Positions 2,783 through 31,157 of a DNA stretch of 64,000 nt are shown one piece after another. Position 1 is the first letter of the stretch. The number at the start of each line of letters is the position of its first letter. Below the pieces are notes generated by a model. That model searched no databases and was not told the DNA's origin. It saw nothing but the letters and a program-made list of their open reading frames with translations. The translations under genes were made by a program, and so were the position numbers. This DNA comes from Macrostomum lignano (taxonomy: Eukaryota): assembly GCA_002269645.1 (NCBI GenBank), contig NIVC01000109.1, positions 372,001 to 436,000 of the forward strand. Reading direction: 5' to 3'.

Positions 2783-5367
2783 TCAACTTGACCGCGCTCT
2801 CTTCAGAGAAGTCCCAGATTCTGCAAAAACCCGAGAGTTTATTGAGTGAAAGAATAAATATTCGAGCACAAAATGATTAATTTTAGACGTTCTCAAATGC
2901 ACAAGAACGTACGTGAAGGTATTCCGGGGTTCCCCTTGGAGCTGTTGGCCTGATCTCTTACGAAATTAATGCTGAGCTCTTCACTCTTCCATTCGTGGCT
3001 GTGGACAACAACCGAACATTTTTGCCGCTCACTGACATTTGCATATCTCCAATCGGGAGTCCTCACCTGAAGTAGGTGCTGAAGATCAAACGTGTCAAGA
3101 CCATTTCAAAAGTCAGCTACTTCTTGACCTGACAGCATTAACTGGCATATTAAAATGCACGTGAGGGCATTTAAAACTATACAACTTTAGGATGGTGCAA
3201 ACGCTACATCCTCATTGAATAGGCAGGCCAAATTTCATTTCTGTACTTTCTACGAACGTAGATCCGGGAAGCCCATTACCTTTTTAACAGCATCGACATC
3301 GACCACGAACTCAGTTCGGTCTCTCGTGAGTTCATTGATGACTGTGAAATGTACCTTTATGTCACTCTTCTGAATTCCTGAAATTCAAATAGTATGTGTT
3401 AGCAGCATATGTATTTAGCGTGATTAATTCAGTTGAAAATTTGTTTTTAAATATAGTGTTTAAACCGAGCGCACCTGTTGTAGGGGTCCTGGTGTGGATC
3501 GCCAGCATGCTGCCGCCCTTCTTTGGCACTTCCGCTGGGTTCAGACAATCGACCTGTACAGTCTTATTTTCCTCTGAAAAGGATGAAACGCATTGACAAA
3601 TGACCATTATTGACTGAGAGTTCAGAACGAAACTGAGACACTCACTCTCACTGACGATCGGGTCGCTAAACACAGTGCTCAGCTGCCCTTCTCTACCAAA
3701 GAAATCGACGAATGAGAGCGAGAACGCCAGTCGAATGCGACCAAAGTTTTTGGTTGTGTATTGAGTTGACGGAGCTGTGGGACCTGAAACAGCGCCAAGT
3801 TTGTACGTAGTAAGCTTCTTTAACTCAGACTTTAACAGCAAAAAACGAGGCAATATGAGAACATATCAGTTTTTAAAGGATCACGAAAAACTGAATTCTC
3901 ACAATCTGGAAGCTGAGGAACATTTCTGCGTCTGGCTTCCATGCCGTCTTCGATGTCTTTCTTGGTCTTCCTGAGGACGCAGATGACAGCCAGTCGCTCA
4001 AAGCTGAAGAGTATAATCATGCATTATCACTACTTTAATTCGAAAATAAAACTCTCTCTGTGCGATTAAATCTGACAATTAATAAATTAAATATTGTCGC
4101 CAACAAATATTGAATTGACCTTTCATGTGTCAGCCATGAATTTTTACTCACGTGATCTCCCATTCACCACCAGAATCTCTCGATGCATCAACAGACTTCT
4201 TCAGCTGGAAATATCCGTTGCTGCAGTGGTCTCCGTGCAGGTAGTACGGATGAGGAGCCTTCTCCTCGGCGCTCACGGTGCACACAGTCAGCTGCAGCTG
4301 CGAGTGCACAGCTGGGTCGATGCCGCTGACGCGAACTCTCACGAAGCTCTTGTTGCCATCGGTGGAGCTCCTGCCGTCTAGCAGGCGGCCAAGTTCGTAG
4401 CTGTTTCTTCTCTGAGACTCGTAGCGAAATCCGTAGAACCGAACCGGCTGCTCTTCGATGGTCAGCGACGGCGGCTGCAGCTCTTTCAGACTGAGGAGCT
4501 GGGGCTCCGCTTGAAGCAGAAAGTCTCTGCCATTCACCTGAGTTGCGTCTGAAGCTGCTACAGTTCCAGAATATTCGCAGTACTCCACTTCACTTGCTAC
4601 GATTTCATTTAGAAACTAAAATCGCATTGACAATTTCGGAAAAATATATTTCACAGAGCGAGAGGTGCAGATAAGATGACTTGATCTAACTGGTGCCTTC
4701 TTCAAAAACTAATGAAGACGAAAATATCCAAAGGACAACTAAAGTAACATGGATATAGGACGCGACACTCACGTTTCCTGGTGAAAAAGTTTTGAAGGCT
4801 AATTTCTATAAATATTTTGCTGAATACTACCGCTTTGCAATTAGCATTTATTTATACTGTTTACAGATTATACACGGCTAATCGAAACCTTTCGGAGAGT
4901 TAGAAATGGAGTTTAAGGTACCTAATTTTAGATAGTAAGGCATACCTTGTTGAAAAAATGGGTTGCCTTTAGACGCGAATGCTATTTTATCTTAAAGGGG
5001 AATAAATTTCGAAGGTCCCAGCGAAAAAAGACATTTCCACGGGCATCCATTCAAAAGTGAAATTGTTGGGAAAGGTGGCCTTTAAAACATTTTTTATAGA
5101 TTTCGAGTGTTGCCTCCTTCTACTTTAGTAGTCCTTGAAATATCCTGGAGTAATGTTACAAAATACGAACGCACTGAAAGTCGCTTCTAGATATTAAATC
5201 TTTTTATAGCATAAAAACTGGGTTTAGAGTCGTGTGCTCACCGCTTGCGTGCTTGTAGCCGCAATCATTGGGTTCCGGTCAGGCTCATGAGGCAACGGAT
5301 ACTTAGCGCTGCCTCCTTCGGACTCATGCTGCCCCAGAGCTGACGAATGAAAGAGCAGCTGTTGCAT
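2783..5367 (-). CDS. Rel/NF-kB-like gene 1 (RHD + IPT, about 383 aa). Exons 5367-5242 (tentative), 4537-4152, 4003-3903, 3783-3646, 3573-3475, 3377-3280, 3078-2913, 2820-2783
   Basis: LTIEEQPVRFYGFRYESQ, PHPYYLHGDHCSNGYF, FERLAVICV, RIRLAFSL...VFSDPI, IPT segments LNPAEVPKKGG / IQKSDIKVHF / HLLQVRTPDW, and end SLKRARSS*. GT-AG phases are consistent throughout; the first exon is uncertain. Confidence 0.85.
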
Positions 5368-6989
5368 TGTGACCTGTAAATTTATCCGGATGGAATGCTA
5401 AACAAGTTAGGGCTCATTTTTCTAGGTAAACGGACTGCTGACATGGAGAAATTTTCGCATCGGCACACAAAATGCAGCCTTGATGTTATGGACCGCACCC
5501 AGAGTGCAGAGTACGTGCAGTCTTTGAATCGCGTGTACTCATGAACACAACTGACAGCATTCAGTCATATCTCAGCATGTATCAAACAGCTCTTCATAAT
5601 TCACTTTTTACTTTTAATTTACTTTACTTTCACATAAAAACTTGTCTGCCTGAACTCTAGCACTGTCCTGACCAGTTTATAAACTAGTGACTGGAATCTT
5701 TTTAATGCTGAACTTGGCAGAAAATTCTCGAGCTCCTACATCACATGAATTAGCTAGAAAAAAATGCGCACATAATATTGTAAATAGGTTAAACTTACCC
5801 ACTTTCGAATTCCAATGCAATCAAATATTTATTAATTGATAGACAGTTGCAAGTTGCAGAAAATCGAATACAATATGCAGTGAGTTGGTATCCAAGCACT
5901 CTGCTGTATTAATGCACTAAAAATGATAGTACCTTGTAAAGACTGTACATAAAGCTTTCTAAATTACACTCAGTGTGCTGAACAGCTCAACCGAGTGCAG
6001 CTTTGCTTTTGGCCAACCAAGGGAAGAGAAGCTTGATTCATACAGACTTAGTCTCTCTCTTTGCTGTCTGCTTACAGATAGATTCAACAAGATTTTAGTT
6101 TAGATGCATTTGTGTTCTTGTACTTTTTGAAGGGTATTATCTTAGCATACATAGAGTTTCATTCTACTCTGTAGGTTTGTAGCTTCTGCACTGTTGAGTG
6201 TAAATGTTCGTGAACTGTACATGTCTGTGACTGTACATGTTGAAAATAATATCTGGCTTTGAGCTCCGGTGCAACACAAACTCGGTGGGCCCTTTTCTAG
6301 CGTCTTGTGTATGGTCTGCCTTTGTAGATGGCAAACGCTTTGGTGCACATCGCCTTCTTGTTTGAACCATTTCTTGTCACCGCAGAGCTCGATCTGTCGT
6401 AGTCATGGCTCTTTCAGGTGACTCATTTAATTAAGGTGACCATGCAGGTGACTCGTTCAGGTGACTTATTTAGTTTAGGTGACCAGGTGACTTGAACGTT
6501 CAGAATATCAGGTGACTCGTTTAGGTAACACATCCCTGAATCATTCCTATGGCAGTCAGATAACTAAAAAATTATTTTGATGATTCCAAAGTCCAAACCC
6601 TATTTCATATGAGTACTTTGCACATACTCATCATTAGGTATGATAGACCAATGCAGATGAAGCGCCTAGGAGACCAACAGGCTCAGAGCAAGTCTTAGCA
6701 AATACGAGGATATGCAAAGTGTAATTGCTCTAAAAGCGGTGAAGAGTGCAAAAACGAGTCAACAGTGAGACTAAGATGTTTTTCCTCGAATTTTGATTGA
6801 ATTTTAAAGCTTCTTATTGGGGTTCATGTTTTAAAATATATGCATCAATACTCATATGCTCGTAACATAAAAAGTTTGAAACAAAAAATGTACATAGTCA
6901 AGGTTGGCAGAGTACATTTAGTTCTACATGCATATCACTCATCACACAGGTTTTTCAACACTATAGCTTTTTTTCTTTTTAAAAGGCAA

Positions 6990-9127
6990 TCACTTTTGCA
7001 AAGGCCTTTTCAGAGCGCGGGAACCTAAAATGTAGAAAGGCGATGGGAGACTGTCAGGTTGCTCAGAAATGGTATAGTCCCAGCTTATTACGAGCGTAAA
7101 AGCGTTATATCTACCTTGAATTTGCTCTTGCATCGACGTCTTAACCAAAATGATATTTATCTCTTCACTTTCGAATCCATTGCTACAGACGGTGACGGAG
7201 CATTTCTGGCGGTCACTGACAGACGCTTGGCTCATGTCAGGTGCCGTGACCAAGAGGATATGCTGAGGGCAGATCATGTACTCATGTCAGAAAATCAAAT
7301 TGAATTATCAATTGGAGATCTTCTTCTGATCAACGCACTTTTGTATTACCTTCTTCATTACGTCCACGTCACGAACATAAACAGCTTTCTGTTTCGTGTC
7401 AACATTGGTGACAATAAAGTGCACTTTCACATCCCTCATCGGGATACCTGTGGTAGGGTTGCTTGAATGAATGGCAATCATACACCTGCCCTTAATCGGC
7501 ACTTCCACTGGATTCAGAGAGGTGATTTCAATGTTCTTCTTTTCCTCTGGAGAGCAACTGTGTGGAATGTGTTACAGGCGCTACATTAGCAAAATGGAAG
7601 ACCAGCAAGATACTTACTGGCACTGCTGATCTTGTCGCTAAACTCAGGGTTGTTCAGCTGCCAGTTCTGACCGTTTGTATCAGTGAACTCGAGACAGAAA
7701 ACCAATCGAATTTCATTCAATTTGTCTGTGGCGTAGTCTTTACCTGATGTTCGAAAACATGATCAAATAACAGCTTCCCTTAGCATAAACCAGATGCTGC
7801 AGAGTGCTCAAAATTTGACTAATTGTGAGCATATTGCATAATATAAAGCTTTTACTTACAGTGTAGAAAAGCAGGCAAGTTATTGCGTCTCGCTTCCATG
7901 TCCATCTCGGAGTTTTTGTTCTTTTGCTTGGTCACGCGGATGACTGCCAGCCTGTCAAAGCTGATTATAAAAGGTCGAAGGTGCCGAATTCTGTTCTGCT
8001 GAAAAAAATTATCGATAGCAATCCAAGGGGTATTTACCTAACATCCCAGAAATCTTTGCTAGTGACAGACTTATTCAGCTGAAAATATCCGTTGCTGCAG
8101 TGGTCTCCGTGCAGGTAGTACGGATGAGGAGCATTCTCCTCGGCGCTCACGGTGCACACAGTCAGCTGCAGCTGCGAGTGCACAGCTGGGTTGATGTCGC
8201 TGACGCGAACTCTCATGAAGCTCTTGTTGCCATCGGTGGAGCTCCTGCCGAGCAGCAGGCCGCCAACTCTGCCGCTGTCCTTCTCGATCTCCGACTCGTA
8301 GCGAAATCGGTAGAACCGAGCCGGCTGCTCCTCGATGGTCAGCGTTGGAATTTGCACATCGGCGGGCTGGTCGAGTGCATCAAGGAGATGCACGGATTCG
8401 CTGCCGCTGAGTAGCTCGACTCCCGGCTGCAAGTTTGGCTTGAGTTGATGAATTTAAACAAAGACGATTTCACACTTTTCACAGAAACGCATGCATAATG
8501 GTCAAATTGGCAAAATCTTTATATGCTCTAGGGTGGATAAACATTCCCTTTTAAATGAGATGAATTATTATAGAGTCGGTAAAACCTGCTCTCTGAAGTC
8601 ATTAATTTAAGATTAATGTAAAGATTTAGGGGGTGTCATTTTGGCAGAAAAACTCTATTTACACTTCTGCCCTGTCTGTATTCAATTAAGTACAGCAGTG
8701 TAGCTAAAAAAAACTGTAGATTCACGGGAAAACCGTGTGATTGCCGCGGACTTTCCATCTAGCTTTAAAAGTTGTTGAGATTGATACGCTTGTAGGCTCG
8801 TATTCAACTTAAATGTGGATAATTTCTGTTGTTCGATTGTGTGACAGTCCGAATCCCAAGATCAAAGCACTTCGGCGTCACTTAAGTATCACCGATGAGA
8901 TTTTAGCGCCAATTAAGATTCACTAATGAGATTCATATCACTAATGAGTCAGCGCCCATTAAGCGTCACCGATAAGCGTTTAGCGCCACGGCAGTGCCTC
9001 CATCTCAATGCCCAATGCCAGCACCTGCTTGCTGCAATGTCCAAATTGAGTCACTTACGAATCCGGCCACCAGTTGATGTGGCTGCAAAGAAGCTGGGGT
9101 CTCACGGAGCTGGACACTGTGAAGCAT
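6990..9127 (-). CDS. Rel/NF-kB-like gene 2 (354 aa). Exons 9127-9059, 8426-8038, 7960-7860, 7743-7618, 7546-7350, 7262-7115, 7024-6990
   Basis: EEQPARFYRFRYESE, HPYYLHGDHCSNG, FDRLAVIRV, EIRLVFCLEF, LNPVEVPIKG, HILLVTAPDM, and end ALKRPLQK*. Exon lengths sum to 1065 nt in frame. Confidence 0.85.
8726..8756. promoter_or_regulatory. Rel-type sites GGGAAAACC (8726-8734) and GGACTTTCC (8748-8756) in intron 1 of Rel-like gene 2
   Basis: Motif match to kB/Dorsal-type consensus; function untested. Confidence 0.35.
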
Positions 9128-9278
9128 GATTTTCAATTTCAACTTGTCAATTTTATTCACTCAACTCGTATCAGTCCGTTCTATCGCCTCTGTCGTACTG
9201 TACACCAGTTTCAGGCATACAAGATCTTATGAATATACCGCACAATCTCTCTGGGGGGCTAATCCGTGGCCAGCCCGT

Positions 9279-9383
9279 GGGAATTCCGCAAAGCAAGCAA
9301 GAGTTATTGTACACTCCACGTGTCTTCATTGTTAGTTTAGTACATATAATTAAAAGTAGAACTACCAAGAGGGGGGGATTCCC
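9279..9383. promoter_or_regulatory. kB-like sites GGGAATTCC (9279-9287) and GGGGATTCCC (9374-9383) upstream of Rel-like gene 2
   Basis: GGGGATTCCC is a full match to GGGRNWYYCC; the two sites lie 150-260 bp upstream of the predicted ATG. Confidence 0.4.
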
Positions 9384-9450
9384 GCCTCCCCTGACAATTT
9401 GTTTTCTGCGCCGTATTGGAGCAACGCTTGCACAGGGAATTTAAGAAAAC

Positions 9451-10039
9451 GGGCTTAATATTTGTTGTGCACCTTCTCAAACAAGAATTAAGTCGCCAGC
9501 CCTCCGGACCGTCGAAATATATGACGGTTCTGCCAGAAGGTCGGATTTTTCCCATTAGCGCCAGCGTATTCAGTACACCCTCTGCGTCAGCTCTGACTAT
9601 GAACAACCTGATACTAATTTCTCGAGTTTCGCTGATCAAGCCTCGACAGTGGGCAAGCCTCAATTGCTGGACATCCTCAGCTAGTCTCTCGAGCATTCCG
9701 TCATCACCCGGACGCCGTCGGCACCTTGAACAGATTACACCAGGCGACTGTGGACATGCAGTTGATGCAGTTTATGGACATGGAGCCACCTGCTGAAGGT
9801 CCAGAAGCTCTGTCTGGGTGAAGGCCAGTGATCAAGAAAGCCGGAGCTGATGCAAGCACATGTGGTCGACGTGCTGATGAAATTTGGAGGCTTGGCAAGG
9901 CTGCACTGAGGCGCTGCTGATTGGCACACAGGGCTGAACTGAATACACTGGTAGAATCGTCGAATACACCCACGGTCTGGGGGGCTGGCGACTTACATGT
10001 AATTCTTGTTTGAGAAGTTGCGCAACAAAAATTTAGCCC
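9451..10039. repeat. Imperfect inverted repeat; arms about 9451-9590 and 9920-10039
   Basis: gggcttaatatttgttgtgcaccttctcaaacaagaattaagtcgccagccc on + matches gggctaaatttttgttgcgcaacttctcaaacaagaattacatgtaagtcgccagccc on -. Confidence 0.7.
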
Positions 10040-10206
10040 ATGTTGCATTCCAGCTTGTGTCATGCCTTTGATGAAGTTTTCCTTTTGGTTGAACAGAACC
10101 ATTGAAGCTGTAGTAAAATTGAACTGGCGTATGCTTGACTTGGCTTATTTTAGCTTGTATTGGTAAACTCTTATTACTTCATCTTTCCTCATTAGGATTT
10201 TCCAAA

Positions 10207-10665
10207 GAATCATCATTATGATCTCCCAGCATCATCATTTTGATCTCCCAGCATCATCATTGGGATCTCCCAGCATCATCATTATGATCCCCCAGCATCA
10301 TCATTATGATCCCCCAGCATCATCATTATGATCTCTCAGTGTTTTCAATGGGATCTCCCAGCATCATCAATGGGATCTCCCAGCATCATCATTATGATCT
10401 CTCAGCATCATCATTATGATCTCCCAGCATCATCATTTTGATCTCCCAGCATCATCATTGGGATCTCCCAGCATCATCATTGGGATCTCCCAGCATCATT
10501 ATTGGGATCTCCCAGCATCATCATTATGATCTCTCAGCATCATCATTATGATCTCCCAGCATCATCATTGGGATCTCCCAGCATCATTATTGGGATCTCC
10601 CAGCATCATTATTGAGATCTCCCAGCATCATCATTTTGATCTCTCAGTGTCTTCATCGAGATCTC
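10207..10665. repeat. 22-bp minisatellite (atcatcattatgatctcccagc)
   Basis: Visible tandem units. Confidence 0.9.
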
Positions 10666-11099
10666 CAGGATTTTTTCCAGCATCACCAAAGCGCATTTTT
10701 CAGCATCATCTCAATTGAATTTCTGTAAGTACCTTAGATGATGACCTTAGAAGATGAGTACCTTAGTTATCAAAGAAAAGAATCGTTGATGTCGATATTC
10801 AATTTCAATTTTATATATTTGTGAGAATAGGCAAAAACATTTCCGATTAACACTCTCCTGTAGCATAAGACTGCAATCTTTACAATGCTGTAAACAATCA
10901 CACAGAAAATTCTGGAACATAACTGTTACGTTCTTTCTGATATAATAAATAATTCAAAATTAATACACCTGTTAATAATAAAAATATTACTCGGTAAAAC
11001 CATGCAATTTTACCATGACTTCGAATAAGATTCAGTCAGAACTAGAAATCTGCAGAGGAGTTGTTAGAAAATAAAATTTATTAAACTTATTCCAGATTG

Positions 11100-14000
11100 T
11101 CAAGTTTGCTGCCGAGGTCTTTTGCGCGAGTTTCGCGTGTCTGAAAGCGGGTTTTGGAGTAAATAATATCATCTTTATTGATCTTAGATTTTTTGATATT
11201 TTGATTTCATGAACGTAAATCCCGATTCCCCAATAAAAAATTCCTCAATCCCAGATTCCTCAATCCCAGATTCCTCAATCCCAGATTCCTCAATCCCAGA
11301 TTCCCCAATCCCCAGATTCCCCAATCCCAGATTTCCCACTACCAGATTCCCCAATCCAAGATTCCCCAATCCCAGATTCCCCAATCCCAGATTCCTCAAT
11401 CCCAGATTCCTCAATCCCAGATTCCTCAATCCCAGATTCCCCAATCCCAGATTCCTCAATCCCAGATTCCTCAATCCCAGATTCCCCAATCCCAGATTCC
11501 TCAATCCCAGATTCCTCAATCCCAGATTCCCCAATCCCAGATTCCCCAATCCCTGATTCCCCAATCCCAGATTCCCCAATCCCAGATTCCCCAATCCCAG
11601 ACTCCCCAATCCCAGATTCCCCAATCCCAGATTCCCCAATCCCAGATTCCCCAATCCCAGATTCCCCAATTCCAGATTCCCCCAATCCCGGATTCCCCAA
11701 TCCCAGATTTCCCAGTCCTATATGCCCCAAATCTCTAATTCCCTATCACAAATTCCCCAAAGCTGGATTTCATGCTCCCCAATTTATTCTAATCCCACAT
11801 GCCGCATCACCTGCAGAGCCGACATTGCCGCACTCTTTGCCAAAGAAGACAATTTCCAAATCTTCGCTTTCGAACCCGTTGCTTCGAACTGTCAACCGGC
11901 ATTTCAGCCGGTCATTTCTGGTGATGGAAGTCATGTCCGGCGTTCTCACAACCAGCAGATGCTGCAATTAATCATTTAGAAACGATGAAGGTCATATTAT
12001 AATCAGACAGCTTATCGCAAAATATCTCTGAGAAAATAAAACTTGCCTTTTTCAGTTCTACAATCGAACACGAACGAACAAAGTTACGAAGTGAACCCGT
12101 CGATTCAGCAGATGCAGATCCGGCACTTGATTGGCCGTGTAATGTTTGCAGATCAACTTTTATGTCGTTTTTGTTGATTCCTGAAGTATTTTTACACTTA
12201 CTATGTATAAATCTGTTGGTGGGTGCCTGTGCAGTGAGGTGCGTGTCGGTGGAGTGAGGTGGGTGTGGGTGGAGTGAGGTGGGTGTGGGTGGAGTGAGGT
12301 GGGTGTGGGTGGAGTGAGGTTGGTGTCGGTGAAGTGAGGTGGGTGTCGGTGGAGTGAGGTGGGTGTCGGTGGAGTGAGGTGGGTGTGGGTGGAGTGAGGT
12401 GGGTGTCGGTGGAGTGAGGTGGGTGTCGGTGGAGTGAGGTGGGTGTGGGTGGAGTGAGGTGGGTATCGGTGGAGTGAGGTGGGTGTCTGTGGAGTGAGTT
12501 GGTGTTGGTGGAGTGAGGTGGGTGACGGTGGAGTGAGGTGGATGCCGGTGGAGTGAGGTGGGTGCCTGTGGAGTGAGGTGGGTGTCGGTGGAGTGAGGTG
12601 TGTGTGAGTGGAGTGAGTTGGTGTTGGTGGAGTGAGGTGGGTGTTAGTGGAGTGAGGTTGGTGTGGGTGGAGTGAGGTTGGTGTGGGTGGAGTGAGGTTG
12701 GTGTGGGTGGAGTGAGGTGTCGGTGGAGTGAGGTTGGTTTCGGTGGAGTGAGGTTGATGTCGGTGGAGTGAGTTGGTTTTGGTGGAGTGAGGTGGGTGTC
12801 GGTGGAGTGAGGTGGGTGTCGGTGGAGTGAGGTGGGTGTCGGTGGAGTGAGTTGGGTGCAGGTGTCTTTAGACTGAGATGGGTGCCTTTGGGGAAAGCAG
12901 ACGTCTGTAGTAAAGTAACCAATCAATAAATCAATCTACCTGTCGTTGGCGTCTTGGTCAGAATGGCCACCAGACTGCCACCAGTCAGGGGCACCTCTGC
13001 CGGATTCAAGCGCTCAACCGCGATGGATTTCTTCTGTTCTGAATGGTGAATTTTTCAATTAATAGGTAATAAATTAAATCAGATATTTTGTAAAAACTTT
13101 GAAATTTTCCCGTAAGTCTTAGCATATACTTGAACATAGATTCCGAGTTCTACATTCCGAATTCCAGATAACAAGCTCCAGATCCCAAATCTCACATTTA
13201 GAAACACAGATCCCGAATCCCAGATCCCGAATCCCAGATCCCGAATCCCAGATCCCGAACCCCAGAATCCCAGATCCCGAACCCCAGAATCCCAGATCCC
13301 GAACTTTAGATCTTGCATCCTAAATCTCGAATCCCAGATCCCGAATCCTAAATCTCGAATCCCAGATCCCGAATCCCAGATCCCGAATCCCAGATCCCGA
13401 ACCCCAGAATCCCAGATCCCGAATCCCAGATCCCGAACCCCAGAATCCCAGATCCCGAACTTTAGATCTTGCATCCCAAATCTCGAATCCCAGATCCCGA
13501 ATCCTAAATCTCGAATCCCAGATCCCGAACCCCAGATCTTGCATCCCAAATCTTGAATCCCAGTTCCCGAATCCCATATCCTGAATCCCAGATCTCGAAT
13601 CCCAGATCCTGAATCCAAGATCCCGAATCCAACATATGAGTCCTAGACTTCGAATTCTACGAGCGTAGATACCGAGTCCCAGATCCATAAATCCCAATTA
13701 CCAAATCCCAAATCCCAAATCACTTAAATTTAACCCCAGACCAGCAATGAGTCACAGACCATCTTGAACTTACTGTCATCATTAATAGGATCACTGTACA
13801 CCGTGCTCTGCCACCAGTGCATGCCTCTGGTGTCCGTGAATTGCAATGAAATTGCCAGCCGAATCGAACCCATGCTGCGGCTGGTGTATTCCACTTTGGA
13901 ACTTTCCACTGCTGCACACAAAGTCAAATGCGAGTTTTTAATATAGTAAAAAAAAGTGGCAACATTACTTAAAGTAGTACAATAATAATAGTACTAATAG

Positions 14001-16731
14001 ACTCACCATCAGGCAGACTGGGGACATTTGCGCGCCTCAGCTCCACTGCTCTCTCAATGTCCTTCTGACTTTTCCTGGTCACGCAGATCACGGCCAGGCG
14101 GTTGAAGCTGCATTGGTGTTGGGGGGGGGGTCTTGCGAATGCGATATGTAGCTGATGGCTATGATAGTGCTTCGGGATTGGCTTTGAGATTGGCTTTGAG
14201 ATTGGCTTTGAGATTGGCTTTGAGATTAGCTTTGAGATTGGCTTTGAGATTGGCTTTGAGATTGGCTTCGGGATTGGCTTTGAGATTGGCCTTGAGATTG
14301 GCTTTGAGATTGGCTTTGAGATGATTGGCATTGAGATTGGCTTTGAGATTGTTTTAGGGATTGGCTTTGAGATTGGCTTTGTGATTGGCTTTGAGATTGG
14401 CTTTGAGATGATTGGCATTGAGATTGGCTTTGAAATTGTTTTAGGGATTGGCTTTGAGATTGGCTTTGTGATTGGCTTTGAGATTGGCTTTGAGATTAGC
14501 TTTGAGATTGGCTTTGAGATTGGCTTTGAGATTGGCTTCGGGATTGGCTTTGAGATTGGCCTTGAGATTGGCTTTGAGATTGGCTTTGAGATGATTGGCA
14601 TTGAGATTGGCTTTGAGATTGGCTTTGAGATTGGCTTTGTGATTGGCTTTTAGATTGGTTATGTGATTGGCTTTTAGATTGGTTATGTGATTGGCTTTTA
14701 GATTGGTTTTGAGATTGGCTTTGAGATTGGCTTTGAGATTGGCTTTAACATTGGCTTTGAGATTGGCTTTGAGATTGGCTTTAAGGTTGGCTTTAACATT
14801 GGCTTTGAGATTGGCTTTGAGATTGGCTATGAGATTGGCTTTGAGATTGGCTTTGAGATTGGCTTTGAGATTGGCTTTGAGATTGGCTTTGAGATTGGCT
14901 TTGAGATTGGCTTTGAGATTGGCTTTGAGGTTGGCTTTGAGATTGGCTTTGAGATGATTGGCATTGAGATTGGCTTTGAGATTGGCTTTGAAATTGTTTT
15001 TGGGATTGGCTTTGAGATTGGCTTTGTGATTGGCTTTGAGATTGGCTTTGAGATTAGCTTTGAGATTGGCTTTGAGATTGGCTTTGAGATTGGCTTCGGG
15101 ATTGGCTTTGAGATTGGCTTTGAGATTGGCTTTGAGATTGGCTTTGAGATGATTGGCATTGAGATTGGCTTTGAGATTGGCTTTGAAATTGTTTTTGGGA
15201 TTGGCTTTGAGATTGGCTTTGAGATTGGCTTTGAGATTGGCTTCGGGATTGGCTTTGAGATTGGCTTTGAGATTGGCTTTGTGATTGGCTTTTAGATTGG
15301 TTATGTGATTGGCTTTTAGATTGGTTATGTGATTGGCTTTTAGATTGGTTTTGAGATTGGCTTTGAGATTGGCTTTGAGATTGGCTTTAACATTGGCTTT
15401 GAGATTGGCTTTGAGATTGGCTTTGAGGTTGGCTTTAACATTGGCTTTGAGATTGGCTTTGAGATTGGCTTTGAGATTGGCTTTGAGATTGGCTTTGAGG
15501 TTGGCTTTAACATTGGCTTTGAGATTGACTTTGAGATTGGCTTTGAGATTGGCTTTGAGATTGGCTTTGAGATTGGCTTTGAGATTGGCTTTGAGATTGG
15601 CTTTGAGATTGGCTTTGAAATTGGCGTTGTGAATTCATCTCAGAGTAACAGCAGATCAAAGGGGGGCCGTAGCCCAGCGGTAGCGCAGCTGCTCTGGTGT
15701 GCCAGCGACCCAGGCTCGATTCCAAGTGCAGTCACATTAATTTGGGGCTAAATTGGAAACTCGGCTTGGCTCTGCTCGTGCAATTAACAGCCTTGAGAGC
15801 CAACCCCCCAAGGCGCAGTGAAGCGTACATGCCTAACGATAAAATAAAGTTAGGGCCGCTGTACACTCCTGTGTGAGTGTGTGCCTGCGTATCCGCGCGC
15901 TTGTATGCCTGCTCAGGGAAGTCGGCGGAATGGGCAGTAATGCCTCTCGCCGGTTGTGTGCCTATGTCGCTTAAAGTGCGCCAGGGTGCACACAACCCCC
16001 CTGCATCTAAAAAATGAAAAAAAACAGCAGATCAATGAAGCTCACGTGATCTCCCATTCACTGCCCCCAATAGCTGAGTCCACGGTCTTCTTCAGCTGGA
16101 AATATCCGTTGCTGCAGTGGTCTCCGTGCAGGTAGTACGGATGAGGAGCCTTCTCCTCGGCGCTCACGGTGCACACAGTCAGCTGCAGCTGCGAGTGCAC
16201 AGCTGGGTCGATGTCGCTGACGCGAACTCTCACGAAGCTCTTGTTGCCATCGGTGGAGCTCCTGCCGAGCAGCAGGCCGCCAACTCTGCCGCTGTCCTTC
16301 TCGATCTCCGACTCGTAGCGAAATCGGTAGAACCGAGCCGGCTGCTCCTCGATGGTCAGCGACGGCGGCTTCGGCAGCGGCTGAGGCTCGTGCAGAACCA
16401 GGATCCGAGGCTGCTCTGGCAGCAGAACGTCCCTGCCAATCAACTGGGTTGTCGTCGCCTGCAGAACGATTTGAGGCTTGATTGAATTTCTGACAGCCAG
16501 AAATGCGTTCGCTTCTTTCTAGTTCATGTCTGTAAACAGCTATTTTGACAGTGAATGCGATTCTGTAATTTGCTTATTCCCACTTAATTATCACTTTCCG
16601 CCTGGGGACTGGGGACTCCACTGGGGTGAAGAAGACTGCAGGATTCTGACCATAGCTGTTTCGGGCTGGTATAGGTGGATCCCAACAGTGATTCGTGCCA
16701 TAAAACTGAAGAACACACAAGATCTTACCAT
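11100..16731 (-). CDS. Rel/NF-kB-like gene 3 (359 aa). Exons 16731-16729 (ATG only, tentative), 16458-16046, 14107-14007, 13911-13774, 13038-12940, 12180-12047 (GC donor), 11961-11811, 11140-11100
   Basis: EEQPARFYRFRYESE, FNRLAVICV, SIRLAISLQF...YSDPI, LNPAEVPLTGG, HLLVVRTPDM, and end NSRKRPRQQT* followed by AATAAA. Phases are consistent (1080 nt). Confidence 0.85.
11232..11715. repeat. 15-bp minisatellite (cccagattccycaat) in the last intron of Rel-like 3
   Basis: Tandem units; source of the spurious GESGI/LGNLG ORFs. Confidence 0.92.
12230..12860. repeat. 20-bp G-rich minisatellite (ggtggagtgaggtgggtgtc)
   Basis: Tandem units within the Rel-like 3 intron 12181-12939. Confidence 0.92.
13208..13720. 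repeat. 14-bp minisatellite (cccagatcccgaat)
   Basis: Tandem units, intronic. Confidence 0.9.
14168..15625. repeat. 12-bp satellite (gagattggcttt) with a 642-bp higher-order duplication
   Basis: Tandem units; a variant block recurs at 14701 and 15343. Confidence 0.92.
15660..16022 (+). mobile_element. tRNA-derived SINE, about 360 bp, with A-rich tail and 13-bp TSD
   Basis: A box TAGCCCAGCGG and B box GGCTCGATTCC in the head; tail aaaaaatgaaaaaaaa; AACAGCAGATCAA at both 15647-15659 and 16023-16035. Confidence 0.8.
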
Positions 16732-16968: not shown

Positions 16969-16998
16969 AATTTTCCCGGGACATTCCCCGGTTTTCCC
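16969..16998. promoter_or_regulatory. Cluster of Rel/kB-type sites about 240 bp upstream of the Rel-like 3 start
   Basis: GGGACATTCC (16978-16987) matches GGGRNWYYCC; it is flanked by reverse-strand GGGAAAATT and GGGAAAACC. Confidence 0.45.
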
Positions 16999-17707: not shown

Positions 17708-17825
17708 ATGCCAATCGGCGCTGAGAACAACTATTTGAGCAACGATGATGGCATGACCTTCGACTGCTGGAAGCCGGTGCTCCGCAACGATTCCGGACGT
17801 GGAGCCGTCGTCCGAACCACCGGCT
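17708..17825 (+). pseudogene. Relic of the FDCWKP family gene
   Basis: DDGMTFDCWKPVLRNDS, then a frameshift within gagccgtcgtccg; lacks the Gly/Ala region and the C-terminus. Confidence 0.65.
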
Positions 17826-18523
17826 GTGTTGACTGCAATGCCAAAAGTCATTTTTGCATCATTTTCAATATGATTAAGCCTCTTTTAAAGATATCCGTTC
17901 GGGGTTTAAGCGCCTTGCATGCCTGCTTGTTTGATCAGTCCGATGGAGATACATTTCAGGCTCGTAGGCTAATGTGTTGTCTCATATTGCTTACCTGTCG
18001 CTTAAGTATTCATAGCAAAATTGTTCGCGTGAAATGATGCAATAAGCGAGACGAACCCAAGTTAAATATATGCATTGCACTTATCTATCTATCTTGTCTT
18101 TAATGAATGTGGCGGATCCACAATTTTTCATTGCCGTAATAGTTTGTAAGTTAATCAAATTCTCTGCCGTTGAAACTGGGGAAGTCAAGTTTCGAGCCTG
18201 CAAAGTTGCCAGATGGAATCGATGCTGGTGTTTCAGAGACACTTTACGACTCATCATGCTCAAATTTAGACATTGGACTAATTGACACGGAGTGGTTGTC
18301 TCTGGAAGTGTTCAAAGCTCAAATGGATAAAGTGAAACCAAACTGAGAAAAAATTCTAGTCTAAAATGTTTGATCGGCTACTGATTTATTCATTAGAAAA
18401 TGTTCAACTTCTTACGAGTAAAGCGCAAACCAATTAAGGAATAAATTTGTAATCAAACAATACGACTAAAAAGTTGCCTATGAAACACCAGCAATCATCA
18501 CTGAGCGGTCAGATGCGTATCAG

Positions 18524-19205
18524 TCAGCACTGCTCAGCGTGAGCAGCCAGCCGACCGCTCCTCAGCCTCACGAAGTCGATGCGGAACCGATCGCCCCACG
18601 AGTTCTCCAGCATCAGCAGCGGCAGCCGCAGGGACGACTCGTCGCCTGCCTTGAAGGTTGACGCCGGCAGCTCGACAACTCCGAGGACGTCGACTCGAGT
18701 CACCCTCGGGTCCGACACGACGTCGCCGAGCGGACGGCCGGACGACGGCTCGACGGAGTCGTCGCGGAGCACCGGCTTCCAGCAGTCGAAAGTCAAGTCT
18801 CCGTCAGCGGCTCCGAGAACAATCCAGCCGACGGGACCGAGGGCCACTGTTGTGGCGGCTGCGCCAGCCGCTGTGGAAGACGCCCCTGCAGCCCCAGCGC
18901 CTCCCAGAGCCGCCCCGATGGCCGCTCCCTCAGCCGCGCCGGCAGCGGCCGCGCCAGTCGCAGCGCCGCCAGCGATTCCAGAGGCGGCCGACGCCGCTCC
19001 ACCAGCGATCGGGGCCGCGGCGCCACCCGTGGCGACAACCGCTCCGATGGCAGCAGCAGTGCCGAGAACCATGGCTGTAGCTTGGCTGAAGAACTTTAAA
19101 TCCTTTTCTGGAAGCTCTGAAGCTGTCTTGAAAGAAATTTTCAACTCACTCTGCCCTATTTATGCTGCTGCTGCTGCCAGTTGTTCCTTGTAGGTCATTC
19201 AGCAT
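18524..19205 (-). CDS. Unknown Gly/Ala-zipper + GPxGW-FDCWKP protein, copy 1. Exons 19205-19150 and 19085-18524
   Basis: ATG CTG AAT...GCA GA|gtgagt and ttcttcag|C CAA GCT join in frame across a 64-nt intron; GC-rich; clear paralogy with copies 2 and 3. Confidence 0.8.
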
Positions 19206-19572
19206 CGCCACTGTCTTTTTGTAAGTTGTGAAACCTGGCGGAAAAACTCTTCAACTCACTAGGCTACTACATTGTGCACCATTTTTCAGTTTTCAATTTT
19301 CGATTATCTAACAATAAGAACAATTGCCAGAATAACACGGTTGTACCTGTTGCTCTGCGAAGTACAAGCTAAGCAGCAATTTTCATTTTCCATTTTTCGT
19401 TTTGCAACAAAAGCACAATGGGAGCCCATTGAGGGCTTTTATTGACCTGTTTTGGACTTACAAGGAACCAGAGACAGCATAAATACGAGGCTGCCGGACG
19501 GACAATTTTGCAAGACTTCTCAGCCCATAAAGAATCAAGAAGCAAGCAGAGCACAAACTGACCTGCAGCAGC

Positions 19573-20139
19573 ATGCTGATCATCGGAGCACTCAGCGGAG
19601 CCTGGCTCACCTCGGGAGCGGCCAGCGCGGCCCTGGTGGGACTGGCGACGGGCGCCGGTCTGGGCGCCGGGGCGCAGCTGGCCGGCTCGGGAGCCGCCGG
19701 AGCCGCCGGCGCAGCGGCCGGGGCCGCCTCGGCTGCGGCCATCCTCGGAGCGGCCATCGGAGGCGACGTCTCGTCGGCGGTGGCGGGCGGCGCGGCGTCG
19801 CTGCCGGCCTCCTGGGCGGTGGCATCGCCGGCGCTGATGTCGGGCCCGCTCGGTTGGTTGCTGGTCGGCTGCTCGACCGACACCGCCGCAGCCGCCGCAG
19901 GTTCAGTCAGCTTCGACTGTTGGAAGCCGCTGGTGCGCGACCTCTCGGCCGAGCCGTCAGCCGGCCGGCTGCTGCGGGACCTCGCCGCCGACCCGAGGAT
20001 CGCCGAGGTGGCCGTCAGGGCTGTCGGAGCGTCGCCGCAGATCCGCCTGCGCAACGTCTGGGGCGAGGCGTTCGGCCTGCGACTCATCGAGCTGCCTGGC
20101 AGTCGGGTGGCGGCGCACGCCGAGCCGTTGCTGGAGTGA
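19573..20139 (+). CDS. Unknown Gly/Ala-zipper + GPxGW-FDCWKP protein, copy 2 (5' end uncertain)
   Basis: 188-aa ORF containing GPLGWLLVG...SFDCWKPLVRDLSAEPSAGRLLRDLAADPRI...RVAAHAE. Confidence 0.8.
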   Translation: MLIIGALSGAWLTSGAASAALVGLATGAGLGAGAQLAGSGAAGAAGAAAGAASAAAILGAAIGGDVSSAVAGGAASLPASWAVASPALMSGPLGWLLVGCSTDTAAAAAGSVSFDCWKPLVRDLSAEPSAGRLLRDLAADPRIAEVAVRAVGASPQIRLRNVWGEAFGLRLIELPGSRVAAHAEPLLE

Positions 20140-20345
20140 CTTTCAGACACTTGCTGAGCCATTTTGCTGTGGGACGGTTTGGTCCGCTTCAATTTAAATT
20201 ATACATCGACTTAATACTTTAATTGGGCTGTCTTTGTTGGCTCATTTTTATTACTCAACCAGGCCCATTGTATTGGATTTTCAGTTAGGCATCAGTTCTG
20301 GATCTAACCTGAGATATAAGTAGGTTTAATCTTCTACAATTGCAG

Positions 20346-20991
20346 CCAAGCGGGTTTAACCATGGTGGCTGCCACTGCCGTTGCTGTCGGAGCCATCGTT
20401 GCCACAGGTGGCGCCGCTGCGGCAGCTGGAGCCGGTGCGGCCACTGCTAGCGGAGGAATCGGAGCAGGTGCGTCAGTTGCAGGGGCGTCAGCTGCAGCTT
20501 CCACCGCAGGAAGCACGGCTGCTGGCATTGCGAGCGGTGCGCTGACAGGCGCTGCCGCTGCTGGAACTCTTGAAGGAGCGGCCGTAGGGGCCGCTGTGGG
20601 AGGCGCTGGCGCTGCCGGCGTGTCCTCGAGTGCAGCTGGCGCAGCCGGGGCTGCCACAGCAGGCGGACTGGCCCTCGGTCCGGTCGGCTGGATCGTTCTC
20701 GGAGCCGCTGACGGAGACTTGACTTTCGACTGCTGGAAGCCGGTGCTCCGCGACGACTCCGTCGAGCCGTCGTCCGGCCGTCCGCTCGGCGACGTCGTGT
20801 CGGACCCGAGGGTGACTCGAGTCGACGTCCTCGGAGTTGTCGAGCTGCCGGCGTCAACCGTCAAGGGAGGCGACGAGTCGTCCCTGCAGCTGCCGCTGCT
20901 GATGCTGGAGAACTCGTGGGGCGATCGGTTCCGCATCAACTTCGTGAGGCTGATGAGCGGTCGGCTGGCTGCTCACGCTGAGCAGTGCTGA
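20346..20991 (+). CDS. Unknown Gly/Ala-zipper + GPxGW-FDCWKP protein, copy 3 (acceptor at 20345, ATG at 20362)
   Basis: 209-aa ORF; same acceptor context (cag|ccaagc) as copy 1; C-terminal half nearly identical to copy 1. Confidence 0.8.
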
Positions 20992-21599
20992 CTCCACACT
21001 TGACTGTCTAAACATCGTACATGATTCATGTATTTTTTTAATTCAACGAATTGCTTGGAGAACAGACTGAAAATCCATTGCTCCGCCTGTAATCTCAACT
21101 TATGCCGGTACATGCAGGTCCCACAATGCTTATGTAGATTTTAGATTTAAAAAAAATTAAATTGATTGCACAAAACTCTGAGTCACTAATTTTGAGTAGA
21201 TAAATATTTTAAATATACTAACAACGAAATTACGAGTGTACATGTCTAAATTAGGAAAAATCAAGACATCAAGACAGCTCTACTTCTGCCCTTGAAGATG
21301 TCTTTAATAACAATTTCCGGCTTCAGATAGAATTTCTGTTTCCGTGCATATCACACTACGAGCGTCCTGTATCGAATACGAAAAAAAAGATTGAATAAAA
21401 ATTGCAGGTGTTTGTCTCTACACATCTGCTAGCTGTTTAATTCTTTTAATTAATTAAAAGACGAAAAATTGCTAATTTATTTTTGAGCTTTTGTGGAAAC
21501 GAATTTTTGAACCTCCAACTGGGCGATGATTGCGTATTTGTTGAAAACCGTAACTGTTCTTCTCATTGTTGGATAAACTTGGAAAACTGAAAAGTGATG

Positions 21600-22075
21600 T
21601 AATGTACAGCCAAGCTACAGCCGAGCAATAGCCAGGTACAGCCTAGCTACAGCCAGGTACAGCCAAGCTACAGCCAGGTACAGCCAAGCTACAGTCAGGT
21701 ACAGCCAAGCTACAGTCAGGTACAGCCAAGCTACAGTCAGGTACAGCCAAGCTACAACATCCTACAGCAAGCTACAGCCAATCTACAGCCAAGCTACAGT
21801 CAGGTACAGTCAGGTACAGATAAGCTACAGCCAAGCTACAACTAGCTACAGCCAAGCTACAGCAAACTACAGCCAAGCTACAGCTAAGCTACAGCCAGCT
21901 ACAGCCAAGCTAGAGCAAGCTACAGCCAAGCTAAAGCCAAGCTACAGCCAAGCTACAGCCAAGCTACAGCCAAGCTACATCGAAAACTACAAGCTACAGC
22001 CAATCTACAGCCAAAGTTACAATCTACAGCCAAGCTACAGCCAGGTACAGCTAAGCTACAGCCAGCTACAGCTAC
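21600..22075. repeat. 11-bp minisatellite (ctacagccaag)
   Basis: Degenerate tandem units. Confidence 0.85.
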
Positions 22076-23439
22076 AGGTTTTCGGGTCCCGCGACGGTGA
22101 TTGCGCATTTCACCGTATTGGCGCTCAACTTCTTTTTTCACTAGCTAAATGATATAAAGTACCAGCGTAAACAATTTTAATTGTCTGCTTTATGTACTTC
22201 AAGTGATTGCTGAACCGCTAAGACAGTCAATATTTGTGATATTGACCAACCCCGCTGCCGGCCTGCCCCACCCCACCTCATTTCTGTCGGGGTATTTAAA
22301 GTGCAAAAGCTTTATTCCAACTTTTTGAATATTCGGTAAATTCGCACTGATGTTGGGACAATGACAGAAACCGATCTTACTCACTCCTAAATTAACCCAA
22401 TGAGCGTCAGAGCACGAGAGCTCAAGGCACCTTCAGCAGTCCTCTGGCCGGATCCACTTCTAACTCTGTACGGAAGATCTCGACCCGTCCCTAAGAAGAC
22501 AATAGAGTACGAACCTCCAACCCTCTTAGAAATAACGCAGCTCACTCAAGATGCTCTTGAATTCCACAAGTCCGACAGGCAAACGACGGGCCAGGCTGCA
22601 CTGGAGCGTCAGGCTGCTCTCGATCTTTTGAGTTAATCTGAGCATCTGAGTCTGAGTAGACTCTGCGCACCACCTGTGCCATCAACCTCAACACACAAAT
22701 GATATAAATATTGTGCACTGCTTCATCCTTGGGTACACCGACCATGAGCAGTTCGCTTTCTGATGCCAGAAGGACTGCAGTGCCACTACTACTCGCTACT
22801 TTGAAGTCACAGATCGAACAGATCGAATGCCACTGCAAAGATCTGGAAGCAATTGGACGTAAAGTCAGTTCACAATATTATGTGATTACAAGTGTCCTGG
22901 CAATCAAAAGCAGATCTGCGGTGCTTCTTACTTTATGACTGTGTACGAGCAGCCCGCCATAATCAAGTCTTAGTTCGTTCGTCAGAGACGCAACTAACTG
23001 ACAAATTTATGAGAACTTTGAACAAGAAAAGCGTTAGCTGAATATCAAAAATCATGAGGATTCTGATAAATCTACAAAATTACTTCATCGGTGTTCTCTA
23101 TTGTCCATGTTTTCTCAAACAATACTGTTCATGGACAGCAGTAGAACAGAAATGTTTGCCTTAAAAAGTTCTGGAACATAGCGCACTGTAAAAATGTTTG
23201 GAATTTGAAGAAGCACCCTAAGGACCATCCAGTGCCGTTGCTTTTGTCAGTTTTTTTCTGAGAATTTGTCAGAAACCGATTGGCTGACGTTTTAGTGAAT
23301 AATTATTTATTTATTTTCAAACAAAACACGCATTTAGCATTAATGATGAAAACTGGTGCACACTAAATATCAAAAATGCACAGAGATTTGTAGTTGCTTA
23401 GCTTGAATTACAGATTAGATCTATTACTAGAAATCTCAC

Positions 23440-29701: not shown

Positions 29702-31157
29702 TCATTCCACACAGAAGTCAGCAGTAGCAGCTCTAGTCAGCTGCACTTCGCAATTGAACTCGGCGCTAAAAGAATCTAAAAACTCTGGCAACACCGACTC
29801 CACTGACACGTCGCGGCCCAGCTCGTTGGTTAGCGAGGTCACGGACTTGCCTAGCAGGCCGCAGGGAACGATATGTTGGAACCAGGCCAGGTCTACGTTG
29901 CAATTGATGGCCACACCGTGCGAGGTGAGGTAATTGGCCGCGTGAACTCCTAGTGCTGCTACCTGAGGATTGGGGAGTGGCATCATGGGAACTGGGAATC
30001 ATCTCAATAGCTAAGTATCAGGCAGAATCGAGGATCAGGGGGAATCGAGGGTCAGGGGGAATTGAGGGTCAGGGGGGATTGAGGGTCAGGGGGGATCGAG
30101 GATCAGGGGGAATCTAGGGTCAGGGGGAATCGAGGGTCAGGGGGAATCGAGGGTCAGGGGGAATCTAGGGTCAGGGGGTATCGAGGGTCAGGGGGAATCG
30201 AGGGTCAGGGGGAATCCAGGGTTAGGGAAGAATCGAAGGTTAGGGAAGAATCGAAGATCAGGGAGAATCGAGGGTTAGAGAAGAATTGAAGGTCAGGGAG
30301 AATCGATGGTTAGGGAGAATCGAAGGTCAGGGAGAATCGAGGGTTAGGGAAGAATCGAAGGTTAGGGAAGAATCGAGGGTTAGGGAAGAATCGAAGGTCA
30401 GGGAGAATCGAGGGTTAGGGAAGAATCGAAGGTCAGGGAGAATCGAAGGTCAGGAAGAATCGAGGGTTAGGGAAGAATTGAAGGTCATGGAGAATCGAGG
30501 GTTAGGGAAGAATCGAAGGTCAGGGAGAATCGAAGGTCAGGGAGAATCGAGGGTCAGGCAGATTCTATAATATTAGGAAGCTGTGATCGTGGTGAATCTA
30601 ATCTAGAGACAATGGGAAGTCAAAGAAAGAGGGTCCAAATACAGAAAAGTGAAAGCAGCAAAATAAAAACTACAACCACAGCTCACCTTCCGGTCGGCAA
30701 TCCACACGCCCACATCCTCAGTAGTGCGCGCGTCCCCAAGCCCGTAGCCCCTGGCGCACAGATCCACAACAGTTCGCTGCAGCCGACACACGTAGTCCCT
30801 GAGACTGCGGCCGTGGTTCCTCAGGTCCAGCATCGGGTAGGCCACCAGCTGGCCGGGCCCGTGGAATGTCAGCAGGCCGCCGCGGTCGGCGCGATGAAAC
30901 TCGGCGCCAATTGAGCGCAGCCGAGCCGCCAGCTGGTCGGTGTCGCCGTCGGCCGAATTTGCCGGATCGACGCCGCGAATGCCGACGGTGTACACTGGGC
31001 GATGCTCGAGCAATAGCAGACAGTCTGCTTTCAGGGGCCGACTGCGCAGCAAAGCTGAGTGAAAGCGTTGCAATAATAGGCCTTCCTTGTAGCTGAGGCG
31101 GCCGTGCCAGATGGCCCGGATCAGCCTCCTGGGACTGGGGCCAGCAGCAGCTGACAT
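29702..31157 (-). CDS. LIPT2: Mitochondrial octanoyltransferase (LipB-like). Exons 31157-30687 and 29962-29702, 243 aa
   Basis: LLLLEHRPVYTVG, DRGGLLTFHGPGQLVAYP, GVWIADRK|VAALGVH..LTSHGVAINCNVDLAWFQHIVPCG. Confidence 0.93.
30022..30560. repeat. 18-bp purine-rich minisatellite (gggagaatcgagggtcag) in the LIPT2 intron
   Basis: Tandem units. Confidence 0.88.

Follow-up and report, generated by a model that had tools for sequence, protein, structure and literature searches.

Layout of the gene cluster

The 64,000-nucleotide (nt) stretch of Macrostomum lignano DNA analysed here (the window; contig NIVC01000109.1 of assembly GCA_002269645.1, forward-strand positions 372,001 to 436,000) carries three intact genes that encode small proteins with a Gly/Ala-rich hydrophobic N-terminal region and a conserved C-terminal domain, together with one relic. 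Our analysis shows that these genes, here named A, B and C, are native protein-coding genes of M. lignano that arose by local duplication, with A and C forming an inverted pair around B, and sequence comparison places them in an old, patchily retained eukaryotic family that is also carried by giant viruses. Gene A lies on the minus strand at 18524-19072 and is a single-exon coding sequence of 182 amino acids (aa) plus stop, defined by its open reading frame (ORF), its translation and its alignment with B, C and homologues; the hydrophobic region is encoded by 18842-19072 and the C-terminal domain by 18527-18841. Gene B (19573-20139, plus strand, 188 aa plus stop) and gene C (20362-20991, plus strand, 209 aa plus stop) are likewise single exons, with C-terminal domains at 19840-20136 and 20674-20988, respectively, and with the N-terminal region of C at 20362-20673. 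All three proteins begin with Met followed by hydrophobic residues. The ORF listing and the alignment thus bear out the original prediction of three genes at this locus.

The relic, which that prediction also named, exists but is smaller than was implied. DNA homology extends only over about 17750-17822 on the plus strand, a gene fragment of ~75 nt (..MTFDCWKPVLRNDS..) whose frame is broken by a 4-nt insertion. Its 42-nt core is 93% identical to A and C; the fragment gives a weak tblastn match and is devoid of the N-terminal region and of any recognisable 3' part.

The inverted duplication comprises a left arm at 18522-18846, which holds the C-terminal domain of A, and a right arm at 20669-20993, which holds that of C and to which the left arm is 98% complementary. 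Over these 325 nt the C-terminal halves of A and C are 98% identical, compared with ~76% for the N-terminal halves, and at the protein level A and C are 85% identical overall, with B a divergent paralogue at 44-48% identity to A and C. Homology between A and C ends with the stop codon; beyond it the 3' flanks, compared without gaps, agree at 29% of positions and are unrelated. Read by eye, the 200-nt 5' flanks of A and C have in common only a short CAGCCAAGC string upstream of the ATG, which in both genes follows a YAG shortly 5' of a start codon set in the context ACCATGG or GCCATGG. The divergent intergenic region between A and B (19073-19572) contains two TATA-like boxes read from the sequence, CATAAATAG at 19156-19164 on the minus strand and CATAAATAC at 19478-19486 on the plus strand, located ~85-95 nt upstream of the A and B start codons, and the region upstream of C (20140-20361, plus strand) contains GATATAAGT at 20313-20321, ~45 nt before the ATG. 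We infer that the TATA-like boxes may be promoters and that the YAG may mark splice or trans-splice signals.

Family membership across eukaryotes and giant viruses

A word-indexed protein search with one query sequence returned a single metagenomic homologue, and the orphan-family reading that it suggested was overturned when 1.84 billion cluster representatives were searched exhaustively with an HMMER profile: 352 of them matched at E<=1e-3, and 236 of these also at E<=1e-10. Almost every member is 100-250 aa long and has the domain at its C-terminus. They occur in molluscs (Biomphalaria, Mytilus, Mercenaria), in bdelloid and monogonont rotifers (Rotaria, Adineta, Brachionus), in arthropods (four Daphnia species, the ostracod Notodromas and two sciarid flies of the genus Bradysia), in the nematode Plectus and the tardigrade Paramacrobiotus, in at least 12 ascomycete genera including Colletotrichum, Bipolaris, Stachybotrys, Magnaporthiopsis, Exophiala, Orbilia and Arthrobotrys, and in protists represented by the dinoflagellate Gymnodinium smaydae, the foraminiferan Nonionella stella and the choanoflagellate Acanthoeca spectabilis. 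A motif-plus-tblastn search of bacteria and archaea, with one genome for each of 185,579 species, gave 16 motif matches, none of which was confirmed. The local novelty that had been assumed for these genes therefore gives way to a family that is not lineage-specific and spans eukaryotic supergroups and giant viruses, and the proposed check for taxonomic spread and possible horizontal transfer gave no sign of recent acquisition by the flatworm.

The giant-virus members lie on two IMG/VR metagenome-assembled genome contigs (L009, 4698-5264; L010, 4728-5276) and have the full architecture of the family. Both contigs are AT-rich with dense intronless ORFs; a homologue of Rpb6 is present on one, and DnaJ-like, VWA and CRT-like transporter genes were also seen. 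Introns are absent from the family genes of Daphnia magna, the tardigrade, Biomphalaria and fungi, and a single one is present in those of Bradysia and Rotaria. In a rough neighbour-joining tree the animal sequences group together in taxon-coherent subclades, the fungi form one clade, and the protist and viral sequences fall between them, a pattern that fits old ancestry with much loss and perhaps some transfer. In Paramacrobiotus metropolitanus we also observed an uncalled second copy (L004, 8125-8412, minus strand) 1.6 kb from the annotated gene and divergently oriented to it, which indicates that local duplication has occurred outside the flatworm as well.

This breadth bears directly on whether the window genes are genes at all. 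That they are non-functional ORFs produced by chance in GC-rich low-complexity DNA, by contamination, or by a recent insertion from a giant virus or other foreign source is, in our estimate, very improbable. The GC content of the cluster (56% at 18-20 kb) is above that of its flanks, but GC content at third codon positions (GC3) is broadly host-like, with values of 0.82-0.88 in the C-terminal domains, 0.65-0.86 in the whole genes and 0.47 in the N-terminal region of C, compared with 0.65-0.83 in neighbouring host exons. Long ORFs also occur on the opposite strand, and A and C differ by five nonsynonymous and two synonymous changes, a comparison in which the ratio of nonsynonymous to synonymous substitution rates (dN/dS) is uninformative because there are only seven differences; yet A, B and C all keep the invariant residues of the domain, and the ORFs are far beyond chance, since architecture and residues alike are preserved in 352 homologous cluster representatives. 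The genes are intronless and viral homologues exist, but the viral copies, which are AT-rich, share only 31-38% identity with the window genes, and the latter group with animal sequences and not with viral or fungal ones. Host genes lie on both sides of the cluster within one 973-kb contig, and near-identical homeologues of A (BOX15_Mlig005449g3) and B (BOX15_Mlig026522g2) are present on other M. lignano contigs, annotated as 'hypothetical protein'. The exact product of gene B is recorded on contig NIVC01000109.1, and papers cite NIVC00000000 as the Mlig_3_7 genome of M. lignano. Chance ORFs and foreign DNA are thus largely refuted by cross-kingdom conservation, host-like GC3 and animal grouping, and recent horizontal transfer or viral insertion is rejected on the last two grounds.

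The description of the family as unrecognised also stands. A, B and C have no Pfam match at E<=1 and eight isolated N-terminal regions have none at E<=10; PADLOC and NCBIfam contain no match to the family; phmmer and profile searches of PDB sequences were negative, with a best profile E-value of 0.55; and a literature search by gene and locus identifiers and by motif, including the supplements of M. lignano papers, found no mention of it. Source databases call the members uncharacterised or give them composition-driven misnomers ('fibroin heavy chain-like', 'GPI-anchored protein 23', 'FAM71B'). The family probably has no name, Pfam entry or literature because no named match came from the standard model animals or yeasts.

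The two modules and their possible function

Members of the family share a four-part architecture. A conserved start, M-[V/T]-[V/A/I], leads straight into the hydrophobic stretch; a variable, almost charge-free region rich in Ala, Gly, Thr and Val follows; next come GPxGWxVLG and a short acidic linker; and the protein closes with an alpha/beta domain of ~85 aa in which D-C-W-K, DxS, (P)S-x-G, N-x-W/F, F and H do not vary. In A, B and C the C-terminal domain spans ~100 aa and contains the FDCWKP, EPSxGR, DPR, NxWG and AAHAE motifs, in agreement with the conserved domain originally described, for which a length of about 90 aa had been given. The invariant positions are D-C-W-K, the Ser of DxS, the Ser and Gly of (P)S-x-G, the Asn of N-x-W, a Phe and the His of A-A-H-A, and they hold in alignments of 44, 123 and 18 sequences spanning kingdoms.

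AlphaFold modelling and Foldseek comparison yielded a confident model of this domain with no structural neighbour in PDB or BFVD. Our AlphaFold2 model of the gene C domain reached a predicted local distance difference test score (pLDDT) of 88.8 and a predicted template modelling score (pTM) of 0.79 with 123 aligned sequences, compared with a pLDDT of 75 with four. The model opens with a short helix that covers GPVGW, continues with a beta-hairpin and then has the invariant Cys (Cys20) directly before a helix at 21-25; a second short helix and, after it, a four-stranded antiparallel meander follow, and the invariant His (His101) would be located in the last strand (98-104) of the meander. Foldseek comparison of two models with PDB and of the better model with BFVD found nothing significant (best E 0.28-0.45); for the C-terminal domain against 350,542 PDB chains the best E was 0.45 with TM-scores of at most 0.36, and no thiol enzyme was among the matches. 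The predicted domain is thus apparently a new fold.

Within this predicted fold, the placement of the Cys and His together with the invariant Asn, Asp and Ser suggests that the domain is more than a passive module and carries a thiol-catalytic, self-processing or metal/ligand-binding site. One analogy is with the NlpC/P60-LRAT (PLAAT) and papain-like hydrolases, which are small thiol enzymes and which in the PLAAT type are anchored to membranes by a hydrophobic segment. The family would resemble PLAAT proteins in having a domain of ~100 aa, a hydrophobic tether, a Cys at the start of a helix and a His on a beta-strand, and its Cys-Trp and His-Ala dipeptides recall those of papain. It differs in the absence of sequence or fold similarity, in the order Cys...Asn...His and in the N-terminal position of the anchor, and a papain-like fold for the C-terminal domain was rejected on the Foldseek result.

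The N-terminal regions of A, B and C are 78, 90 and 105 aa long, consist of 71-84% Gly, Ala, Ser and Thr, contain exactly one charged residue each, and end in GPVGW or GPLGW, just as the G/A/S/T-rich hydrophobic stretch was first described. The GxxxG and AxxxA motifs to which that description gave weight are present, and small-xxx-small spacings (46, 44 and 63) are modestly more frequent than in shuffled sequences (40.7, 40.6 and 58.5; z ~1.5-2.9), but the motifs largely follow from composition, and GxxxG counts (5, 6 and 6 against 3.7, 3.2 and 5.5 in shuffles) show no clear enrichment. Across 69 full-length-like members the region measures 43-185 aa (median 90), its composition is 31% Ala, 18% Gly, 12% Thr and 11.5% Val, and the median number of charged residues is one. 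Of 139 members defined by a start of Met and two small or hydrophobic residues and by DCWK 60-200 residues further on, 127 have Val or Thr at position 2. A 19-aa window with a Kyte-Doolittle value >=1.6 occurs at least once in 80% of 248 full-length members, and twice or more in 35%; the 16 residues that precede DCWK, corresponding to the linker, are net acidic. A lone acidic residue recurs within the otherwise uncharged region in an (A/L)-E-G-h-h-h-G motif, which appears as an invariant GEGA in fungi, as AAEGAAIG and TLEGAAVG in the flatworm, and as ATEGAAA and MAEGIAAG in a giant virus.

Taken together, these features lead us to favour, tentatively and at somewhat less than an even chance, a model in which the N-terminal region is a membrane-embedded anchor and the novel alpha/beta domain carries a Cys/His-based catalytic, self-processing or metal/ligand site. 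The N-terminal region would insert into the membrane as one or more weakly hydrophobic helices packed via their small residues, could possibly self-associate, and would hold the C-terminal domain at the membrane surface as the functional head of the protein. The invariant Cys before the short helix and the His of the last strand, with Asn, Asp and Ser, would form that site, and the outcome could be membrane permeabilisation, modification of lipid or protein, or something else.

Several observations weigh against this model. Membrane insertion is read from sequence composition, and the middle of the region has a mean hydropathy of ~0.7-1.3, which falls short of the threshold usually applied to transmembrane segments; AlphaFold places GPxGWxVLG in the globular fold and not in a membrane helix. 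The catalytic assignment derives from residue identity and predicted secondary-structure position, with no thiol-enzyme fold found by Foldseek. The dN/dS of ~0.6 between B and A or C, with dS close to saturation, implies that constraint is weak outside the invariant positions. Finally, some protist members open with a sequence that resembles a classical signal peptide, and the source of one fungal member names it 'Secreted protein'; for these two reasons a secreted or luminal protein is possible.

Such a protein, which we regard as rather unlikely, would use its hydrophobic start as a signal peptide or anchor and its Ala/Gly/Thr/Ser stretch as a low-complexity extracellular spacer, possibly O-glycosylated or self-assembling, with the C-terminal domain acting as an extracellular binding or cross-linking module through its Cys. 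The signal-peptide-like starts are those of the dinoflagellate members, which have a charged n-region; the window proteins do not, and the original statement that they have no obvious signal peptide stands to that extent, although their hydrophobic start could serve as a signal anchor or peptide. By the positive-inside rule, the acidic flank after the hydrophobic region would fit translocation of the C-terminal domain, and the automatic names 'fibroin heavy chain-like' and 'GPI-anchored protein 23' mirror the composition of the spacer. However, a single invariant Cys leaves no conserved disulfide pair of the kind expected of secreted cysteine-stabilised antimicrobial peptides; the Val, Ile and Leu content and the scarcity of Pro and of charged residues set the region apart from typical mucin or silk spacers; the giant-virus members are hard to reconcile with structural secretion; and the N-terminal region is not built of regular repeats. 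On this last point, Tandem Repeats Finder gave only low-scoring arrays of 2-4 copies in the coding regions, and a silk-like or fibroin-like repetitive protein was ruled out since the coding DNA contains no regular tandem modules.

Comparison of the hydrophobic region with known small-residue-rich families provides a further point of reference. Pfam glycine-zipper models are weakly matched by 4 of 123 relatives (best E 8e-5), and the likeness to Gly-zipper_YMGG (PF13441), Gly-zipper_OmpA (PF13436) and Rick_17kDa_Anti (PF05433) lies in small-residue-rich, near-uncharged hydrophobic segments; these families differ in that they do not match the window proteins and have no counterpart of the C-terminal domain. 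ISG12/IFI6-16 proteins (PF06140) are small Gly/Ala-rich membrane proteins that are also present in invertebrates, and they were considered as a lead: they resemble the family in the composition and size of the hydrophobic part but are without the DCWK...AAHA domain, and no hidden Markov model match to PF06140 was found in the 123 members or in the isolated N-terminal regions. HeLo, HELL and MLKL-type cell-death domains and amyloid signalling motifs share a hydrophobic glycine-rich N-terminus with the family. No HeLo or HeLo-like Pfam domain occurs in the 123 members, and amyloid-motif effectors differ from the family, which has a folded alpha/beta domain and no short C-terminal amyloid motif.

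It is conceivable, though in our judgement quite unlikely, that the family constitutes a new class of membrane-acting effectors, in which the N-terminal module permeabilises or remodels membranes and the C-terminal domain controls, processes or arms it. Such a class would be ancient, shared by eukaryotes and giant viruses with possibly part of its distribution due to horizontal transfer, and would act in defence or regulated cell death with capture by viruses. The probability left over from the readings set out in this work falls to something else.

This family is of general interest for its size, with hundreds of members ranging from fungi to flatworms and giant viruses, for a confidently predicted fold that has no structural neighbour, and for an invariant set of Cys, His, Asn, Asp and Ser residues. 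If the C-terminal domain is an enzyme or a self-processing switch, it would contribute a fold not seen before and perhaps a membrane-directed activity that is also new. The scattered occurrence of the family, viral copies included, also makes it a good case for weighing gene loss against transfer, and since M. lignano, Daphnia and several of the fungi are genetically manipulable, the family is experimentally tractable.

The Rel neighbourhood and the rest of the window

The Rel cluster noted beside these genes is real. Three tandem, divergent Rel-homology genes occupy 2900-16443 on the minus strand, upstream of the family cluster, which abuts the 5' end of one of them. Their first exons, at 4148-4588, 8034-8432 and 16042-16443, match RHD_DNA_bind with E-values of 4e-7 to 9e-11, and paralogous downstream exons lie, for example, at 3365-3865 and 2896-3105, at 7589-7762, 7311-7571 and 6993-7286, and at 13733-13993 and 11773-11967, all on the minus strand. 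The Rel genes are a lineage-specific expansion in the flatworm.

This adjacency underlies the proposal that the family proteins are glycine-zipper pore-forming or amyloid immune effectors, regulated by their C-terminal domain and transcribed under the neighbouring Rel genes, which we consider improbable. The uncharged, small-residue-rich N-terminal region with its slight enrichment in small-xxx-small spacing, the weak glycine-zipper matches of a few relatives, and the local duplication, fast divergence and patchy distribution typical of effector or toxin genes are consistent with this proposal, but there is no match to HeLo, HELL or known pore-formers by sequence or fold. Control by Rel was not supported: the interval 17.7-21.3 kb contains no match to the kappaB consensus GGGRNNYYCC, with the caveat that a divergent flatworm Rel may bind another site, and the nearest sites, at 16978 and 17127, adjoin the Rel gene's own 5' end. 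M. lignano gene identifiers were absent from the papers and supplements searched, and no expression data were found there.

Nor did we find conserved linkage. No Rel gene was called or seen near homologues at eight other loci, in Daphnia, the tardigrade, Bradysia, Rotaria, Biomphalaria, Mytilus, Stachybotrys and Magnaporthiopsis, within 10-kb flanks (up to 20 kb in Mytilus). Neighbours in Daphnia and Biomphalaria were nothing of note; those elsewhere included HlyIII, a G-protein-coupled receptor and the second family copy in the tardigrade, a fibrinogen-domain gene (Fibrinogen_C) in Bradysia, an integrase and an F-box gene in Rotaria, an RBR ligase in Magnaporthiopsis, TRAF exons in Mytilus, and tyrosinase, FMO, HET and NACHT-ANK genes in Stachybotrys. 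The proximity of some homologues to TRAF, HET/NACHT-ANK and Fibrinogen_C genes could be taken to favour an immune role, but such neighbours are anecdote and not evidence because these families are large in the genomes concerned. In Stachybotrys the HET and NACHT-ANK genes are 6-10 kb away, with the NLR at 9.5 kb and three genes between, and in Magnaporthiopsis there is no adjacent NLR. The apparent Mytilus edulis TRAF2 fusion (P0124; CAG2227439.1) is a gene-model artefact that joins a truncated family member to TRAF exons up to ~14 kb downstream, since the genomic ORF (L014, 15940-16248) runs on to a normal ..IVCHAKQM end.

Choanoflagellate, foraminiferan, dinoflagellate and giant-virus members argue against a core function in Rel-dependent animal immunity, and the spread of the family over supergroups and giant viruses argues for a more general cell-biological role than that of a flatworm immune effector. 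The Rel/immune interpretation is thus left unsupported, although not refuted, by the tests made here, and a functional link between the family and the Rel cluster can no longer be presumed.

Between the second and third Rel copies, a tandem array at 10262-10601 contains eight palindromic kappaB-consensus decamers (GGGATCTCCC), and this array alone accounts for the surplus of GGGRNNYYCC across the window (27 occurrences against 14.4 expected). The array may reflect chance within a satellite or may be an autoregulatory element.

The window as a whole is rich in micro- and minisatellites. Minisatellite arrays lie at 21557-22093 (21-nt unit, just downstream of gene C), at 54.9-56.5 kb (a long array), and at 11.2-15.7, 36.7-38.4, 45.0-46.2, 49.5-51.1 and 58.1-58.8 kb, and these arrays give rise to spurious ORFs of considerable length in both orientations. 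The cluster is flanked at 24-63 kb by ordinary housekeeping genes, which include a lipoyl(octanoyl)transferase-like exon (30603-31157, minus strand; Pfam LplA-B_cat), exons of an aralar-type mitochondrial carrier at 36.4-41.5 kb and exons of NAD(P) transhydrogenase (NNT) at 48.5-62.9 kb; a mariner/Tc1-like transposase remnant lies inside the NNT gene region (59174-59632, minus strand). At the other end of the window, where positions 1-2000 are 61% GC, a 288-aa ORF at 954-1820 on the plus strand has a tyrosine-recombinase-like C-terminus (..SLRRGGAS..LGDWRS..) with no Pfam match, and is probably the remnant of a Crypton- or DIRS-type mobile element.

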